Below are positions 43,419 through 51,207 of a DNA stretch of 64,000 nucleotides, one piece after another. Numbering within the stretch: position 1 is the first letter of the stretch; the number at the start of each line of letters is the position of its first letter. This DNA comes from Blastocladiella emersonii ATCC 22665 (lineage: Eukaryota; Fungi; Blastocladiomycota), in assembly GCA_025594325.1 (NCBI GenBank), contig JANHCV010000015.1, forward strand, positions 806,001 through 870,000. Direction: 5' to 3'. The notes beneath the pieces are model-generated. The model saw only the letters and a list, made by a program, of their open reading frames with translations. It made no database searches and was not told the DNA's origin. The position numbers and the translations under genes were made by a program.

Positions 43419-43940
43419 TCACGCGACCGTTGACGTGGTCACCGACGCGGCGGCCTCGGCCTGGGCGTGGGCGTCCGCGGCGTGCAAGACAGACGAGTGG
43501 TCGACGGCCGAGGCAGCCGAGAACTCGTCGACGCTGTTGTGCGAGGCGCTGGCGGCCGAGAACGACTCGGCGTGCTGCTGGTGCTGAGCCGAGGAGGCCT
43601 GGAAGGCATCGCCGACCGACTGGAACGCGTCGCTGGCGTTGTCAGCCGACTGCAGGTACGAGCCGTCGTCGTCGCGCTGGCACCGGCCGCCGTGGCCGTA
43701 GCCCCAGTTACCGTTGCCACCCCAGTTGCCGTGGCCGCCGTTGCCACCCCAGTTGGAGCTCCAGTTGCTGCTCCACTCGGACGACCACTCCGAGTGCCAC
43801 TCGGAACGCCACTCGGAGCTCCAGTTGCTGCTGTGCCCGTTGTTGTAGTGGCCGCCGTTGTTGTAGTGCTGGCCGTTGTTGTAGTTGCCGCCCCAGTTGC
43901 CGCCGTTGTAGCCCGAGTTGCAGTTGGCGCCAAAGGTCAT
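43419..43940 (-). CDS. small G/N/W/S-rich low-complexity protein (YNNG and WSSE repeats)
   Basis: ATG at 43940 downstream of TATAAAG (~44041-44047); strong codon bias; no signal peptide visible. Confidence 0.75.
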   Translation of the reverse strand: MTFGANCNSGYNGGNWGGNYNNGQHYNNGGHYNNGHSSNWSSEWRSEWHSEWSSEWSSNWSSNWGGNGGHGNWGGNGNWGYGHGGRCQRDDDGSYLQSADNASDAFQSVGDAFQASSAQHQQHAESFSAASASHNSVDEFSAASAVDHSSVLHAADAHAQAEAAASVTTSTVA

Positions 43941-44555
43941 GTTGTTAATGCGTCGTCTAGTAGAGGGTGGGGGAGGGAGAGGTCGCTTGGAGTGCTGCGG
44001 GATGCTGGTCAAGCTGAAGGAGCGCGGGGAGCCCGGCCAGCTTTATACCCTCACGCTCCCGCTGATCCGAGCAAGCGTTGACCGCAGCGACGGAGTTGAG
44101 TCCATCGCATCGACACGCTGTCGCGCGGCTTTAGTCTCGAACGACGGTGCAGTTTCGGAAGCGAGGCAGCCCAGCCACGGCGAGCGCGACGCGATGGTGG
44201 CGCAGCGCGGCGCATCCTAAGAGCGTGTGGCTCAGCCGTGCGCTGCCTACGCTCGGCCCATGAAAGCTGCGCCACTACGCTGTCGTAACCGCAGCCAAGG
44301 GTTCTGCTGCCTGCTTCGTACACGCGTGAAACTTGTTAGAGCCCGTCTCGACTTCTAAAACGCGACGTCGGATGCGTTCCGCTGCGGGCTGCAGCCGTCC
44401 CAGTCACGCCTTGATGAAATCTTGAACGCGTGGATGGCTCGAACAGCGATAAACCCGCAATGTCACTGAGAAATCGCCGACGACGCGGCACACACGTTCA
44501 GTCGTTGATTGGTAACGGATATATATATGTACAGTGACACGACCGAGTCCTCGCC

Positions 44556-47500
44556 TCACGACCCGCTTCCGCGGCGCGGCGCGTCGACGCTCGGCATACT
44601 GAACGACCGGCGCGACGCCGTGGACGGCGGGAGGTAGAACCACTCGGGCTCGTTGCTCTTGGGGTTGGTGCGCAGCGGCATGATGGGCAGACGCGTCGCG
44701 GGCGGGAGCCGCTTGGCGTAGTCGTCGGCAGACATGAACCCGCCGCCGGACTCGCCGTCGTCGTCCGAGTCGGTCAGCCGGCCCGCGTCGTAAATCTCCT
44801 GCGTCGGCTTGCCCGTCCACCGCGCCGAAGAGAGGCGTTGCGCGGGTTTCGGCGGCTTGGCCGAGGCGGCGGCGGCGGAGGTGGGATCAGTCGGTGGTGC
44901 GAGCGTCTCGCTGCTGCCACCTCCATGGCGCGGTGTGGACCGGCCCGCGATGGGCGCAAACGAGCGGCGGTACAGCGAGTCGCGCGAGTTGGCGCCAGCA
45001 CCGAGCCCGGCGATGCCCGATGAGGGCGACACGGACATGGGCAGGGTCTGGTCGCTGCCGACGGTATGAACCGGCGGCGGCACAGCCGCCGCGGCTGCCG
45101 CGAGCCCGACGCCGCTGGAAGACACGAGGGTACCCGAGAACGACGACGCCATGGTGGTGCTGACGTTGGTGTTGGTCTGGGACCGGAGCGTCTTGATCGA
45201 GTTGGCGTAGTTGAGCGCGCGCCAGCGCGGGTGCGGGTTGACGAGGTACGAGTGCGCGGGGAGGGCGATGATATCGTCCTCGACGACGCCGAGGTCGACG
45301 AGCGTGCGGTACGTCTCGTCCATGAACTTTTCGGGCCCGCACAGGACGACGCGCTGCGAGCGACCGGCCTCGCCGGATGCGACCCACTTGGACCGCTCGA
45401 GGAGGTCGCGGAGCAGCGCGCGGTCGACGCGGCCGGCGTGCTTCTCGATGGCGCGGCACGCGGGCCCGCCGGGCGACGACGGCGCCTCGCGCGACAGCAC
45501 GTAGACGAGCTTGACCTGGTCCGGGTACGCGGCGGCAATGGCCTCGAGCGTGTCTGACCCGATGAGCGAGTCCATGTTGCGCGCTGCGTTGATGACCGTG
45601 ACCTTGGGCCGGCGCCCGATCCACGGGCTGAGCTTCGAGAGGTGGATGATGCCGTCCTGGCCCGTGTGCGCGTTGGTCGCGTAGACCCACCCGTTCTGCA
45701 ACGGGTGGCGGATGAACACCTTCTCGTCGCGCTGCACGGCGAGCTCGTTGGCCTTGGCGGGCACGTTGGCGGCCGATGGCCGCAGGCTGAATGTGGTCTG
45801 CAAGAAATACCACGACACGAGCTGGAGGTGCGGGGTGGCGCCGGACCCGACGCCGATGAGCAGGATCTCGTCCCAGCACCCGTTGCTCATGGGCAGCGGG
45901 CGGCTCGGGTTCATGAGCGGGCTGCCGAACGGGCCGCGGATCTTGTACTGGGCCTCGCCGGGCTGCGCGGTGCGCCACACGCGCGACATGGCGCCGTCGG
46001 GCAGGCACTTGACGACCATGTCGAAGACGGCCATATTGCCCGACACGGGCGTGTAGTAGCGCGACACGAACTTGCCGCGGATGCGGACCTGGAGCTCGAT
46101 GGCCTGGCCGGGGAGGAAGAAGAGCGGCTCCTCGGCGTACACCTCGTTCGGGTACAGCAGGCAGAACTTGAGCCGGAACACCTCGGCGTCCGCGTTCTCG
46201 TTGGACAGCAGCTCCTTGGCCGTCAGCGCGTACCGGCGGTACTCGTTCTTGACGAACTTGGGCTCGTCGTCGCCCGTGTCGAGCTTGGCGACCACGAGGT
46301 CCTTGAGCTTGTCGATGGCCTGCGCCGAGTGGAAGTGCTGGTTGCGCGCCTCGACGATCATGCGCCAGTCCTCCATGAGGATGCGCGCGTCGGCCTCGAC
46401 GTCGCGGTCGCAGATGCCCGACTTTTCGCACTCGGACGCGGGTCGCGACGGACCGCCGCCGCCGAGTGGGGCGCCCTTGGCGTCGGGCACACCGAGCGTG
46501 TCACCGCCACCGCGAGAACCGCCACCGGCCGTCGCCGCAGCGCAGCGTGACCGGAGCCCCGCCGCGTTCGAGCCGGGCGCCGTGAGCGTATTGGGACTCT
46601 TACGGACGCCGACGCTGTTCCGGCGCGCGGCGCCGGGTGCGAGCGCGGGCCCCTTGGGGTCCGAGTAGTCGACGACGGGGACGTCAGTCCAGGGGACGAA
46701 CAGGTCGGCGTCGTAGAGGGCCGAGTTGAAGTAGTCCATGGTGATATCGGTGCCGAGGACGTTGTACAGGACCTGCTGGCCGCCGGGGTGGCTGATGATC
46801 CACTTGGACACGTCGTAGACGAACCCGTTGCCGACGACCCACATGCGGCCGGCGACGACCTGCTCGTCGACCTCGCGCCACGTCACGGCGGGCAGGTCCG
46901 TGCGCTTGATGACGATCTGCTCGGCGGCGAACTTGCGCGTGTCGAGCTTGTTCCCGACGAGCGGCGCGGCGCCGAGCGGGGACCCCCGCGACGCGGCGCG
47001 GAGACGGCGGAACTCCATGACGGCAAAGAAGAGGATCCAGAAGCTGGTCAGCGCGAGGTACGCGATCCAGAACGGCGACGCGAGGATCGACTCGATGCCC
47101 GACACCGGATACGCCACGTTGATCCCGAACGGCATGTTGACAAACCCGGCAACAACGATGGCGCGGCCAAAGTAGTTGTGCGCGAACTTGAGCCCGCGGA
47201 CCCACCGCGATTTCGACGACGCGAGCAGGCGGCCGAGGTTGCCGAACCCGATGATCATCTGGGCGATGACCGCCGTGAAGACGAACAGGCCAATGTACTC
47301 GTGCGTCGAGGTGCCGAGGACGCTGACCGAGATGGCAAGCGCGCCGGCGACAATGACGGCGACGCAGCTGAGCGTCTGCAGGCCGACGTGCGCAACGACC
47401 CAGCCGTCGCGGGTGCGGCAGTACCGGGCGATAGCGACGGCGAGCGGGAACGCGAACCCGAACACGACGAGCATGGTGATGGCGTGGGCCATGAGCGCGG

Positions 47501-49853
47501 GGCTGCTCTCGAGGCGGTCGTCGTCGACGTCGCTCGTGAAGAAGTTGACGGCGGCCTGGCCGCGGTTGGCGCCGTGGAACTGGATCTGCGCCGACGCCGA
47601 GATGCTGTACGAGAAGATGATGGGGATCTTGGCGTTCTTGACGGCAACCTTGCCCGGCTGCAGGTTGCGGCGCAGGAACTCGACCTGGAACGCGCCCGTG
47701 TCGCCGAGCGATTTCGTCGACAGCACCGTGATGGCCGTGTTGGCGCGGACCGTGGCGGGGCTCGGCCGCGTGTACGCGCCGGTCGGCTTGTACTCGGTAA
47801 GCGTGATATTCTTGCCGCCCTGCTGGCTGCGCGCAATGTACATTTCGGTGGCCGTGATCATGCTGCTGCCGCCGAACCCGATGGCGCAGTACCCGGCGTA
47901 CGCGCACTGCAGGAGGCAGTGGACCGACTCGTCGGCCTTGTCGCGGTTGCGGATGTTCCACGACACGCGGAACCCGGGCGCGAGCTCGTGCGAGAAGGTG
48001 AACCCGGGCACGCGGCCGCCGGCGGTCGCGGCGTCGAGCGGCGGCGGGTCGGGCACCACCTGCCAGATGTTGTTGGGGAAGGTGCGCGTCGACTGCTTGA
48101 CGTTGCGCATGATGATCTGGCGCAGGCTCGTGTTGCGGATCTCGGCGAGGTGCTCGGCCCGCATCACGCCCGGGTTCTCGAACCAGAACCGGTCGCCGTC
48201 CCGCAGCGCCTTGAACTGGTTGACAATCGATCGCGAGAACATGGGCCCGACGTTCGACTCGTACATGTCGCGGCGCTCGAGGAGCCCACCGACCAGCGCG
48301 TCCACGTCGTCGACGCTCGCGTACGCCTTGGCGAGCACGTCCGCGAAATCCGGGTGGATGTCGGCAAAGGTCTTGGGCGCGGACAGCGCCATGGACTGGC
48401 GCATCTGCGCGTAGCCCGGGATGAGGTAGTCGCGGGCGCGGAACAGGTCGAAGACGAAGCCGTCCTTGGCGAGGCGCGGGCCAAAGACCTGGCTGCGCAT
48501 GGGCTCCGTGTAGTAGATGTCGGCCTCGTCCTGGATCTGCGACGACATGCCGGCGAAGAGGGCGCCGATGCCGACCGACTTGACGAGGTCCGAGCGGAAG
48601 AAGTTAGCGGCCATGTCGACCTGGACCGTGGTGTTGGTCTTGTCGTCGATGTAGGTAAGGAAGGCGGGGATTTCCGAGTGGCCGAACCGGTAGGTCGTGG
48701 AGGCGAAGCTCGACTCAATGAGCGGCACGGCCTTGGGGTCGTACTTGGTGTAGGCGTCGAGCGAGAAGCCGAGCAGGAGCGGGAGGTACTCGTAGTAGGT
48801 GATGTGCTGGATCAGCGCGATGACGTGCATACGGGCCTCCTGGAACAGGTCGTCGTCGGAGACGCCCGGGTTCTTGGCGCGGTACGCGTTGGCGAACCGG
48901 TTGTGCTCGCGCATGAAGAGCGTGTACAGGGCCTGCGAGTACGGGCTCGTGTTGCCGACGATGCTGCCAAAGGCGAACATTTGCTCCTGGCCGGGAGGCA
49001 ATGTGCTCTGCGTCACGTTGGTGCCGCGCGGGTTCTACGTGGCGGGAGTGGGTGAGCGTCCGGTCGTTCGTGTAGGAGGGTGAGGCGATCGTACTCGAGA
49101 CACGGTGGGCGAGTAGTCCGAGTAGGTCGAGGGCTCGAGCTTGAAGAGCGGACCATCACGCAGCGCGGCGACCTGCTCGGGCGTCGTGCCGTACAGCTAC
49201 ATTCGAGGTTGGATCAGCAACTCGTCGCGAGAGCCGAGCGGGAGAGCGAAAACGTACGTGCGAGCCATCGAGGAAGTGGGACTGCACGTTGATGGGGATC
49301 CGGCGCACGCCCTGGCCAGCAGCGACGGCGCGAGAAAAGGACATGTTGCTGCCGGGCGGCAGGAACTTGTCGTCGGCGGGGACGGGCACCGAGTACCGGT
49401 CCGCCGGGTCGCTCGATGAGACGACATGAGCGACATCTAGACGGCGGCGCTCGCGGCTCAGGGATCAGCCGAGATAAGATCACAGCCGGCGGCGGGCGCG
49501 GGAGGAAACGAACCATGGATGAAGAACTCGCCCCAGAACGTGTGCAGCACGGAGAGGCGGCGCGCGTTGCGAATGTCCTTTTCGGAACGGGCGAGCGTGT
49601 TGGACAGGACGCGCAGGCCGGCGAGCGACGAGGCGTTGAAGTCGAGCGAGGCCGACACGCTGCGCGCATACGGCGTGCCGGCGGCGCCGAGCGACGGGTT
49701 AGTCTTGTTGTTGCCCGACCCGTCGAACGAGCGGTACTCGCGCTTCGGGGCCTGGGCGAGCAACGGGTGGGCGGCGGCGGCGAGTAGCGCGAGCAGGAGT
49801 GCTGCCGCCGCGACGGGTCGAGGTCGAGAGATGGGCCGCCTGTTGCTGGACAT
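44556..49853 (-). CDS. DUOX-analogous fusion: signal peptide - heme peroxidase - DOMON - cytochrome b561 - cytochrome b5 - FAD/NAD(P)H reductase with SH3-like insert (~1,699 aa)
   Basis: Exons 49853-49514, 49436-49258, 49196-49095 and 49034-44556 sum to 5100 nt in frame. Motifs: YRSFDGSGNN, WGEFFIHD, FLDGSHLYG, REHNR, YRFGHS, LRDGDRFWFEN; GFGGSSM..FHGANRG; four b561 His; HPGG; RYYTP; GSGATP; CGP. Confidence 0.9.
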
Positions 49854-50295
49854 TTCGTTGCTGGTCCAGCGTTCGGCGAGCGTCGAAGCGAGGAGGGGTA
49901 TGTGGGGAAGTGCAAGTCCGAGACGGTGGCGGGAGAGAAAGTGGGGCCGAGCTGACGGCGACGACGGCGAGCGCCGAGCGGCGGCGGCGGCAGATCCCTG
50001 CGTCGGCTGCGCCCGCGCCGTGGCGGAGTGGCTTTGCAGCCAGTCAGGTTGAGCGTTTCATCATATCGCGCTCGATATCGGGATAGTGCTGAACACCGCA
50101 ATTTCGCGGAGTGTGGCTTGGCTGTAGCGCGAGACGCGGCGATGCGCGCCGAGACGCGTCGCGCGAACAATGCGTCTCCGTCACGTGGCCCTGTTGACAG
50201 GCAGGCGATCCGCTCGAAAAAAAGCCTCTCTGCGCTCTCGCAACCTTCCGCGCGCGCTCTCTCAGCTACCATCTTTCAATACCCCAGTCTCTGCA

Positions 50296-51207
50296 ATGTA
50301 TTCGTTCGCCTCGGGCGTCCTCGGCCGCCTCGCCGCGCCGGCCGCGCGCACCGCCGCCCGCTGCTCCCGGTTGGTGCCGCGCCACTCGACCATGGTGGCC
50401 ACCACCGAGTCCTGCTCGTCCATCCGACTCGCTGCCCGCCGCCGCTTCGCCACCGAGGCGCCCAAACCCGCAGCCGAGTCGGTCAGCGGCAACAACGCGT
50501 ACCCGGGCGCGACGGCGCAGCAGCGCGGGGCGTGGGCGCACTACGAGCGCAAGAACGCGCTGCGCAACCAGTCGGCGCTGTACTACTCGGCGGCCGTGTT
50601 CATCACGTTCATTGGTCTGTCGTACACGGCGGTCCCGCTGTACCGGCTGTTCTGCTCGACCACGGGCGTCGGCGGCACCGTCAAGACGTCTCTCGAGTCG
50701 GGCGAGGCCGACCCGCGGTTCCAGCCGTCCAACATGGTGCCCGTGACCTCGTCGAACCGCCGCCTGCGCATCAAGTTCAACTCGGACACGGCGCGCGCCC
50801 TCAACTGGAGCTTCAAGCCGCAGCAGCGCGAGGTGAACGTGGTCCCCGGCGAGACGGCCCTTGCCTTCTACACGGCCAAAAACAACTCGGACCAGGACGT
50901 GATCGGCATCTCGACCTACAACGTGATCCCGGCCCACGCGGGTCCCTACTTCAACAAGATCCAGTGCTTCTGCTTCGAGGAGCAGAAGCTGCGCGCCGGC
51001 GAGGAGGTCGACATGCCCGTCTTCTTCTTCATCGACCCGTCGTTCCTCGACGACCCCAACACGGACGACATCAACGAGATCACCCTGTCCTACTCGTTCT
51101 TCAACGCGAGGACCATCGACGCCAACCGCCTGCACGCCCTCAACCCGCAGGCCCAGCAGGTCGCCGAGAACGCTATTGCCGCCGGCCAGCGCGTCGACGC
51201 CGCATAG
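50296..51207 (+). CDS. COX11: cytochrome c oxidase assembly protein Cox11 (copper chaperone)
   Basis: YTAVPLYRLFC, VVPGETALAFY and YFNKIQCFCFEEQ motifs; mitochondrial-presequence-like N-terminus from ATG 50296. Confidence 0.97.
   Translation: MYSFASGVLGRLAAPAARTAARCSRLVPRHSTMVATTESCSSIRLAARRRFATEAPKPAAESVSGNNAYPGATAQQRGAWAHYERKNALRNQSALYYSAAVFITFIGLSYTAVPLYRLFCSTTGVGGTVKTSLESGEADPRFQPSNMVPVTSSNRRLRIKFNSDTARALNWSFKPQQREVNVVPGETALAFYTAKNNSDQDVIGISTYNVIPAHAGPYFNKIQCFCFEEQKLRAGEEVDMPVFFFIDPSFLDDPNTDDINEITLSYSFFNARTIDANRLHALNPQAQQVAENAIAAGQRVDAA

Follow-up and report, generated by a model that had tools for sequence, protein, structure and literature searches.

Positions 44556-49853 of the window, by which we mean the whole 64,000-nucleotide stretch of Blastocladiella emersonii ATCC 22665 that was analysed (contig JANHCV010000015.1, forward-strand positions 806,001 to 870,000), are filled by one gene on the minus strand, the spliced product of which has 1,699 amino acids. 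From the N-terminus this protein consists of a signal peptide, an animal-haem-peroxidase domain, a DOMON domain, a five-helix cytochrome b561, a cytochrome b5 and a b5-reductase-type FAD/NAD module that carries an SH3 insert.

Gene structure, domain order and topology

The gene has four exons, of 340 nt (with the start ATG at 49853), 179, 102 and 4,479 nt. Each of the three introns, which are 77, 61 and 60 nt long, begins with GT and ends with AG, and the translation is identical at every residue to the GenBank entry KAI9151177.1 from the same strain (P0001 in our comparisons), which bears the automatic name "DOMON domain-containing protein frrs1L". The splice junctions rest on these GT-AG signals, on the identity with the GenBank model and on conservation, and they bear out the four in-frame exons proposed in an earlier sequence-only reading of the window. 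The last exon alone is an open reading frame (ORF) of 1,486 codons with no internal stop. It covers peroxidase residues 208-524, the C-terminal 60% of that domain, and continues through the DOMON, b561, b5 and reductase parts; because all of these share one ORF the fusion does not depend on splice prediction, and the earlier claim of a single polypeptide chain stands. The locus is unchanged in independent DNA assemblies (four runs from one sample), in the contigs of which the introns are present. The gene is confirmed as real and as conserved across relatives.

The domain order put forward in the sequence-only reading was recovered by a Pfam scan and by profile and fold searches (Table 1). Every motif that it had quoted is present: GFGGSSM (M599) and FHGANRG (H694) in the DOMON domain; MAHAITM (H724), AHVGLQ (H756), THEYIG (H785) and AHNYFG (H826) in the b561; HPGG and HFHS (H1107/H1109) in the b5; and RYYTP, GSGATP and CGP in the reductase. 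The profile searches that it had proposed as a check found An_peroxidase, Cytochrom_B561, Cyt-b5, FAD_binding_6 and NAD_binding_1, with DOMON scoring weakly in this protein and above threshold in its orthologues.

Table 1. Features of the minus-strand gene in window coordinates, with the corresponding residues of the 1,699-residue protein and the Pfam matches
Feature	Position	Strand	Residues	Particulars
Whole coding region	44556..49853	(-)		four exons, 49853-49514, 49436-49258, 49196-49095 and 49034-44556 including the stop codon
Predicted signal peptide	49752..49853	(-)	~1-34	basic n-region, Ala/Leu core, PLLAQA; hydropathy peak 11-36
Peroxidase-cyclooxygenase-superfamily domain	48084..49736	(-)	40-524	spans three introns; Pfam An_peroxidase 40-524, E 3e-109, 366 bits against a 25-bit cut-off
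DOMON (cytochrome-type)	47541..47990	(-)	~556-705	haem ligands Met599 and His694; Pfam DOMON 562-649, 16.9 bits, weak (orthologues 38-142 bits)
Cytochrome b561 core	47001..47507	(-)	~717-885	five helices; outer pair His724/His785, inner pair His756/His826; Pfam Cytochrom_B561 728-845, 24.8 bits, cut-off 23
Cytochrome b5	46281..46898	(-)	~920-1125	HPGG 956-959 (His956), second ligand His1109; Pfam Cyt-b5 925-974, E 8e-12, profile positions 1-50 of 74 only
Disordered insert in b5	46401-46685	(-)	~991-1085	low complexity; pLDDT ~30
FAD-binding barrel	45906..46253	(-)	~1135-1250	RxYTP at 1199-1203; Pfam FAD_binding_6 1175-1245, E 1e-9
NAD(P)H-binding domain	45246..45872	(-)	~1262-1470	GxGxxP 1270-1275, CGP 1439-1441; Pfam NAD_binding_1 1351-1447, E 1.5e-4
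SH3-like insert in NAD domain	45621-45770	(-)	~1296-1345	beta structure folded with confidence in the model; Pfam SH3_9 1297-1335, weak
C-terminal tail	44559..45218	(-)	1480-1699	Ser/Pro/Ala-rich, low complexity
Tail motif	44625-44690	(-)	1656-1677	LPxMPxR..NEPEWFYLP, kept in 5/5 Blastocladiomycota orthologues

A signal peptide is predicted from the sequence, and the orthologues have equivalent hydrophobic N-termini. Hydropathy gives five hydrophobic helices, at residues 719-741, 752-776, 786-808, 827-849 and 861-883. The loops after helices 1, 3 and 5 contain three, five and four Lys or Arg residues, respectively, and the other loops contain none or one. By this positive-inside distribution of charge the N-terminal 715 residues, with the peroxidase and DOMON domains, are predicted to lie outside the cell and the C-terminal 815 residues, with the b5 and the reductase, inside. 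Eight of the nine N-x-S/T sequons are in the ectodomain. The signal peptide, the five transmembrane (TM) segments, the charged loops and the sequons all favour the orientation on which the sequence-only reading depended, in which the peroxidase and DOMON part is kept out of the cytosol.

AlphaFold2 models were obtained for residues 545-900 (pLDDT 86, pTM 0.70) and 545-1480 (pLDDT 78, pTM 0.63). The larger model starts with a beta-sandwich, which is followed by five long helices, a b5 fold with a disordered insert of ~90 residues, an FAD barrel and a Rossmann domain that has a small beta insert, folded with confidence, and only about 16 residues separate the end of the last TM helix from the first helix of the b5 region. 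A fold search with this 936-residue model was dominated by the reductase, and the separate DOMON-b561 model was made. Likewise, a sequence search of the PDB with residues 545-1480 reached b5 and b5 reductase only, and a family profile was needed to reach the cytochrome of cellobiose dehydrogenase (CDH) and Dcytb.

With this profile Met599 and His694 align with Met65 and His163 of the CDH cytochrome, and His724, His756, His785 and His826 align with His50, His86, His120 and His159 of human Dcytb. His724 and His785 are near the outer ends of their helices and His756 and His826 near the inner ends; the pairing of the first with the third and the second with the fourth histidine is that reported for the CYBDOM protein CRR (PMC10784552). 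The number of b561 helices is five, not six, and the published description of CYBDOMs gives them five TM helices, a DOMON domain in the apoplast with Met/His ligands and ascorbate as the electron donor (PMC10784552). The DOMON domain, a beta-sandwich in the model, matches the folds of the CDH cytochrome and the DBH DOMON domain. The PDB fold matches to the DOMON-b561 model cover separate parts only. A Foldseek search of the Swiss-Prot entries in AFDB aligned almost the whole model (query ~5-356 of 356) with the Arabidopsis proteins At3g61750 and At3g25290 (CRR) and with FRRS1 of fish, mouse, human and fly, with E values of 4e-17 to 3e-14 and TM-scores of 0.55-0.67. Judged by its modelled fold and its ligands, the DOMON-b561 module is a CYBDOM.

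The best fold matches to the flavoprotein part are the NADH-cytochrome b5 reductases 2eix and 7rom (E 1e-12) and the b5 reductase domain of nitrate reductase. In the b5 domain the sequence FHSAQA around His1109 is what we take to be the parallel of GHSTDA in canonical b5. The insert that directly precedes this second axial histidine varies from 50 to 130 residues across the fungal members and is 28% identical to that of B. britannica. The b5 of Cafeteria and of two metagenomic relatives is uninterrupted and matches Pfam positions 4-73 of 74.

The SH3 insert is 78% identical to its counterpart in B. britannica, and in the orthologue P0009 the SH3_1 family scores 29.3 bits against a cut-off of 22.9. 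It is present in the chytrid orthologues, from which the C-terminal tail is absent; the tail occurs in the Blastocladiomycota orthologues only and, outside its motif, is not conserved (36% identity to B. britannica). The tail motif fits PxxPxR, the consensus for class II SH3 ligands. It is conceivable that it binds the SH3 insert and so forms an autoinhibitory latch within the molecule, in the manner of p47phox/p22phox in NOX2.

The gene stands head to head with one for the cytochrome c oxidase copper chaperone COX11/CtaG, at 50170-51207 (+) (Pfam E 7e-59). About 316 bp lie between the two start codons, and the two genes may share a bidirectional promoter. Directly downstream, at 43419-44012 (-), is an ORF for a Gly/Asn/Trp-rich protein of 197 residues with WSSE/NWGGN repeats, for which there was no Pfam match.

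Conservation and distribution of the fusion

An exhaustive HMMER search of 1.84 billion representative sequences gave 1,128 proteins at E <= 1e-30; the best 150 all have E <= 3e-99 and many span the whole core in one stretch. This search replaced an earlier word-based homologue search with the core alone, which gave three hits, low-complexity words probably having crowded out the candidates. In the ESM Atlas there is a 179-member cluster of peroxidase, DOMON and b5 proteins of about 1,490 residues. The order b561-b5-reductase is fixed: more than 100 clusters (at 50% identity), from fungi and from protists, keep it.

More than 15 fungal genera share the fusion. Within the Blastocladiomycota the full architecture is present in B. 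britannica (54% identity), Sorochytrium and Catenaria, and within the Chytridiomycota in Spizellomyces, Geranomyces, Thoreauomyces, Nowakowskiella, Cladochytrium, Borealophlyctis, Quaeritorhiza and others. It also occurs in Hyaloraphidium, in the Mortierellomycota Podila and Actinomortierella, and in the Glomeromycota Gigaspora, Diversispora, Acaulospora, Funneliformis and Entrophospora. No source in the Dikarya was seen among those hits that were looked up. Outside the fungi the full architecture is present in Cafeteria roenbergensis and Rigifila ramosa. Trinity transcripts of Rigifila, encoding 1,341 and 1,345 residues, hold the whole fusion and are transcript-level evidence of a single mRNA in a relative. 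The query of fungi and protists suggested by the sequence-only reading has therefore recovered the fusion in both.

The predicted cofactor ligands were counted in 28 diverse sequences from fungi, Rigifila, Cafeteria and metagenomes. The DOMON methionine is kept in 25 of 26 and the histidine in 27 of 27. For b561, His724, His785 and His826 are present in all 28 and His756 in 26, and both b5 ligands, His956 and His1109, are invariant (28/28 each). In the reductase R1199 is likewise invariant (28/28), G1270 and G1272 are each kept in 27/28 and C1439 in 25/28.

Shorter forms exist. Proteins with DOMON, b561, b5 and reductase but no peroxidase domain are common in chytrids, and the amphibian pathogen Batrachochytrium has one. 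In a maximum-likelihood tree of the core the full-length forms are basal and paraphyletic and the peroxidase-less forms make up two derived clades, the tree being midpoint-rooted with long protist branches; this topology would fit an ancestor with the full architecture, from which the peroxidase domain was lost twice. B. emersonii itself has two paralogues, P0013 and P0015 (938 and 922 residues; JANHCV010000002.1, L002:5001-7881 and L003:5001-7828), that consist of b561, b5 and reductase only. We considered whether these are split gene models and rejected this, the upstream space being about 1 kb and the neighbouring genes on the other strand. From their sequences they look like a minimal NADH-b561 module, in which the core exists alone.

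We regard it as very improbable that the gene is an artefact, either two adjacent genes misread as one or a decaying pseudogene. The orthologous locus of Catenaria anguillulae (MCFL01000001.1, L001:3406-8915), which automatic annotation has divided into two genes, for a 236-residue peroxidase fragment and an 882-residue b561-b5-reductase protein, would appear to favour such a view. However, the ORF at L001:4837-7113 holds the C-terminal half of the peroxidase domain, the DOMON domain and the b561 in one frame. The public Catenaria gene model is thus probably wrongly split, and we rejected P0004 as a true peroxidase-less form. An artefact is also hard to reconcile with the single ORF that joins peroxidase residues 208-524 to the reductase in B. 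emersonii, with the identity of the locus in independent assemblies, with the conserved ligands and with the recurrence of the fusion in many genera and in the Rigifila transcripts.

The sequence-only reading knew of no functional characterization of this architecture, and our search of the literature likewise found none. Neither the architecture nor the locus tags of its members are described in the full-text literature searched; outside that literature, Iyer et al. (2007), on DOMON architectures, may mention it in passing. The sequence and its relatives are already public under automatic names ("heme peroxidase", "frrs1L", "hypothetical protein"); what is new is the recognition of the architecture, not the gene.

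The predicted electron wire and its outer end

Domain identities and order, topology, ligand conservation and distribution were computed, and from these we infer each electron-transfer step, the donor and the acceptor. We have good confidence in a wire predicted to lead from NAD(P)H through FAD, b5 and b561 to the DOMON haem, and we consider it likely that the protein as a whole is a self-contained trans-plasma-membrane electron exporter. Cytosolic NAD(P)H would deliver electrons to the FAD in the C-terminal flavoprotein, which resembles b5 reductases, and NADH is for this reason a likelier donor than NADPH. Single electrons would then pass to the fused b5 haem (His956/His1109), on to the inner b561 haem (His756/His826), across the membrane to the outer b561 haem (His724/His785) and from there to the extracellular DOMON haem (Met599/His694). 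The fused b5-reductase module would replace the cytosolic ascorbate of ordinary CYBDOMs. Yeast makes no ascorbate. CRR needs ascorbate and in yeast is inactive unless an ascorbate precursor is supplied (PMC10784552), and this provides a rationale for a built-in donor.

Alternatively, the two halves might be uncoupled, with the CYBDOM half fed by a small cytosolic reductant, the b5-reductase serving some other acceptor in the membrane (a desaturase or P450, for example) and the b561 acting as a mere anchor. Fusions of b5 and b5 reductase that feed other enzymes do exist, for example Ncb5or and the CBBR-P450 system (PMC12462446); the b5 here is atypical, and a basic patch, ARYxR, is kept on the cytosolic face of b561. 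Nevertheless, the order b561-b5-reductase is fixed in the clusters described above, the gap between b561 and b5 is short, and the ligands of both halves are conserved together. In addition, Lys79 and Lys83 of Dcytb, which bind ascorbate, have no aligned equivalents here in our reading of the alignment. We therefore judge uncoupled halves to be improbable.

The terminal step is less secure, and its assessment starts from the peroxidase domain. The nearest solved structures are the Dictyostelium peroxidase DdPoxA (6erc; E 9e-61), a short peroxidase (8s6c) and DUOX1 (7d3e; E 1e-50, residues 18-532). Residues were mapped by use of the alignments to these structures and the functional residues defined for DdPoxA (PMC5787809). 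The distal Gln97, His101 and catalytic Arg233 of DdPoxA correspond to Glu109, His113 and Val233, so that the canonical Gln-His-Arg triad is replaced by Glu109-His113-Val233. Ile100, at the position of the LPO Asp, corresponds to Ile112 and the haem-ester residue Glu236 to Thr236, and both acids that form covalent haem esters are thus lacking at these positions. On the proximal side His325, Asn403 and Arg406 correspond to His326, Asp403 and Arg406. Among 11 fungal sequences His326 is kept in nine and Arg406 in all, and an invariant Asp403 replaces the Asn; from this the peroxidase domain is likely to bind haem. Most fungal members have Gln at the position of the distal His and a His four residues further on (QDxSH; residues 109-117 of P0001), and the metagenomic relative P0043 (LDMTH) likewise has the +4 His. 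This i/i+4 Gln-His spacing is reminiscent of Gln203/His207 at the peroxidase site of prostaglandin H synthase, and the pattern may represent a re-registered distal pocket. The protist relatives retain the distal His and Arg. The domain is 59% identical between B. emersonii and B. britannica, a value that matches the cofactor domains, against 28-36% in the disordered insert and tail; by this comparison it is not decaying.

The b5, b561 and DOMON/CDH haems are of high potential, about 0 to +0.17 V, while NOX haems, at about -225/-265 mV, reach the O2/superoxide couple. The Fe(III)/Fe(II) potentials of the peroxidase superfamily lie between about -0.13 and -0.28 V and are the more negative the fewer the covalent links (PMC5787809). 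With these values, reduction of the resting ferric peroxidase haem and of O2 to superoxide would be unfavourable, reduction of compound I or II strongly favourable and reduction of Fe(III) or Cu(II) chelates favourable.

Our preferred, although tentative, proposal is that the DOMON haem re-reduces oxidized, compound I/II-type states of the peroxidase. The protein would then be an NADH-fuelled extracellular hydroperoxide reductase working on the pattern of cytochrome c and cytochrome c peroxidase. A second possible output would be the direct reduction of Fe(III)/Cu(II) chelates. We give none of the possible terminal steps better than even odds: peroxidase re-reduction comes first, metal reduction with a mainly structural peroxidase domain is somewhat less likely, and O2 reduction to reactive oxygen species and some other outcome are each less likely again.

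Several observations weigh against the wire and the peroxidase end that we favour. None of the 11 fungal sequences has the catalytic distal Arg or either of the covalent links, and only three have the canonical distal His; it is uncertain from these sequences whether the fungal peroxidase domain would react efficiently with H2O2. The b5 of this protein is interrupted by a disordered insert ahead of His1109. Finally, the ARYxR patch would still be compatible with ascorbate-type donors.

The missing Arg in the fungal clade can also be taken to mean that the protein is an ascorbate-independent ferric- or cupric-chelate reductase, a CYBDOM with its own NADH donor, in which the peroxidase fold has a non-catalytic role (structural, docking or regulatory) as in human DUOX1. 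The characterized CYBDOMs CRR, HYP1 and SDR2/FRRS1 are ferric reductases, and they match the module over its whole length. The peroxidase-less forms of the chytrids and the b561-b5-reductase proteins of B. emersonii suggest that the core works without a peroxidase. On the other hand, the proximal haem-binding triad is kept and the domain is as well conserved as the cofactor domains, which speaks for a role in which haem is needed; human DUOX1, in contrast, has lost the haem ligand (PMC7794343). We find this explanation doubtful.

A generator of reactive oxygen species is, on redox grounds, the least likely of the three terminal steps. In such an enzyme the outer b561 or DOMON haem would reduce O2 to superoxide or H2O2 and the peroxidase-like domain would use or channel the H2O2, for example in cross-linking of the wall or cyst coat. 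The logic is that of DUOX, in which a peroxidase-homology ectodomain is joined to a membrane domain with two haems and to a cytosolic flavoprotein; the best sequence matches to the ectodomain include DUOX1 (E 1e-50), the distal Arg is lost here as in the aligned DUOX2 (P0050), and the His/Arg pair of the protist relatives could use H2O2. However, the b561 and DOMON/CDH haems, at roughly +20 to +170 mV, are of high potential compared with those of NOX, there is neither a ferric-reductase-type TM domain nor an EF-hand, and the fungal pocket is without the Arg normally needed for fast formation of compound I. We therefore consider this unlikely as well.

Significance and comparison with known systems

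Eukaryotic transmembrane electron export is at present accounted for by two unrelated machines, the NADPH-driven NOX/DUOX/FRE enzymes and the ascorbate-driven b561/CYBDOM proteins. We see something close to an even chance that the proteins described here are an independently evolved class of NAD(P)H-powered exporters, built on b561 and not on the ferric-reductase domain of NOX/FRE enzymes, with a fused b5 and b5-reductase as donor instead of ascorbate. The ancestral form would have had its own extracellular haem peroxidase as terminal enzyme, as a transmembrane NADH peroxidase or a convergent 'dual oxidase'. This class would be early in fungi and shared with CRuMs and stramenopile protists; among the hits looked up, none was from Dikarya.

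If this is true, the family joins the two machines, with a b561 conduit hard-wired to a pyridine-nucleotide dehydrogenase, and the DUOX layout of a peroxidase-like cap, a two-haem conduit and a flavoprotein had two origins, each from different parts. The family would also offer a testable answer to the question of how a CYBDOM could operate in an organism without ascorbate. The protein is an unstudied candidate extracellular redox enzyme of chytrids and arbuscular mycorrhizal fungi, in which iron acquisition, peroxide handling and the formation of walls and cysts are important. A single polypeptide with FAD and an expected four or five b haems is, moreover, attractive for structural and bio-electrochemical work.

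With the CYBDOMs (CRR/At3g25290, HYP1 and FRRS1/SDR2) the protein shares a signal peptide, an extracellular DOMON domain with Met/His ligands, a five-helix b561 with the 1+3 and 2+4 histidine pairs and the fold of the whole module. CYBDOMs stop after b561 and are fed by cytosolic ascorbate, whereas here a cytosolic b5 and a b5-reductase-type flavoprotein have been added, together with the N-terminal peroxidase-fold domain. CYBDOMs by definition have no cytosolic redox domains, and the protein departs from this definition in having its own donor module, the b5 and the FAD/NAD reductase, behind the b561. CDH also has a Met/His-ligated b haem in a DOMON-like beta-sandwich that serves as the mobile one-electron outlet of a flavoprotein. 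CDH, however, is wholly extracellular and driven by sugar oxidation, with no passage across a membrane.

The b5/b5-reductase fusions Ncb5or/CYB5R4, the C-terminal half of nitrate reductase and the fungal CBBR have in common with this protein a b5 followed by an FNR-type NADH reductase and the motifs RxY(T/S), GxGxxP and CGP. They are soluble and feed soluble or ER acceptors, while here a b561 holds the pair at its cytosolic face. The long b5 insert before the second His and the SH3 insert in the NAD domain also set this protein apart from them, and no CS domain was found in it.

DdPoxA (6ERC) and 8S6C resemble the peroxidase domain in having Ile in place of the LPO Asp and in keeping both the distal and the proximal His as well as the proximal Arg. 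As a secreted, soluble enzyme DdPoxA oxidizes halides and thiocyanate, and it has Gln97-His101-Arg233 and the Glu236 haem ester; here Gln, Arg and the ester Glu give way to Glu109, Val233 and Thr236, and the proximal Asn to Asp403.

Membership of the NOX/DUOX family was considered and rejected. The Pfam scan gave no match to Ferric_reduct (PF01794) in P0001 or its orthologues, the membrane domain being Cytochrom_B561 and aligning with Dcytb. There was also no match to FAD_binding_8 or NAD_binding_6, the matches being to FAD_binding_6 and NAD_binding_1, with the b5 domain intervening, and none to an EF-hand family at E <= 0.1. In common with DUOX1/2 the protein has a homologous peroxidase ectodomain (E 1e-50) and, as they do, a degenerate catalytic pocket; the haem-ligand His that human DUOX1 has lost is retained here. 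DUOX has a ferric-reductase or gp91phox-type membrane domain of six to seven TM helices, with four His on two helices, an FAD_binding_8/NAD_binding_6 dehydrogenase directly behind it and, like NOX5, EF-hands, and this protein has a b561-type domain of five, a b5-reductase-type dehydrogenase with an intervening b5 and the additional DOMON haem. At the level of architecture, therefore, the view of the protein as a DUOX analogue built from different parts is upheld, with a homologous ectodomain joined to a b561-type membrane part and a b5-reductase-type dehydrogenase.

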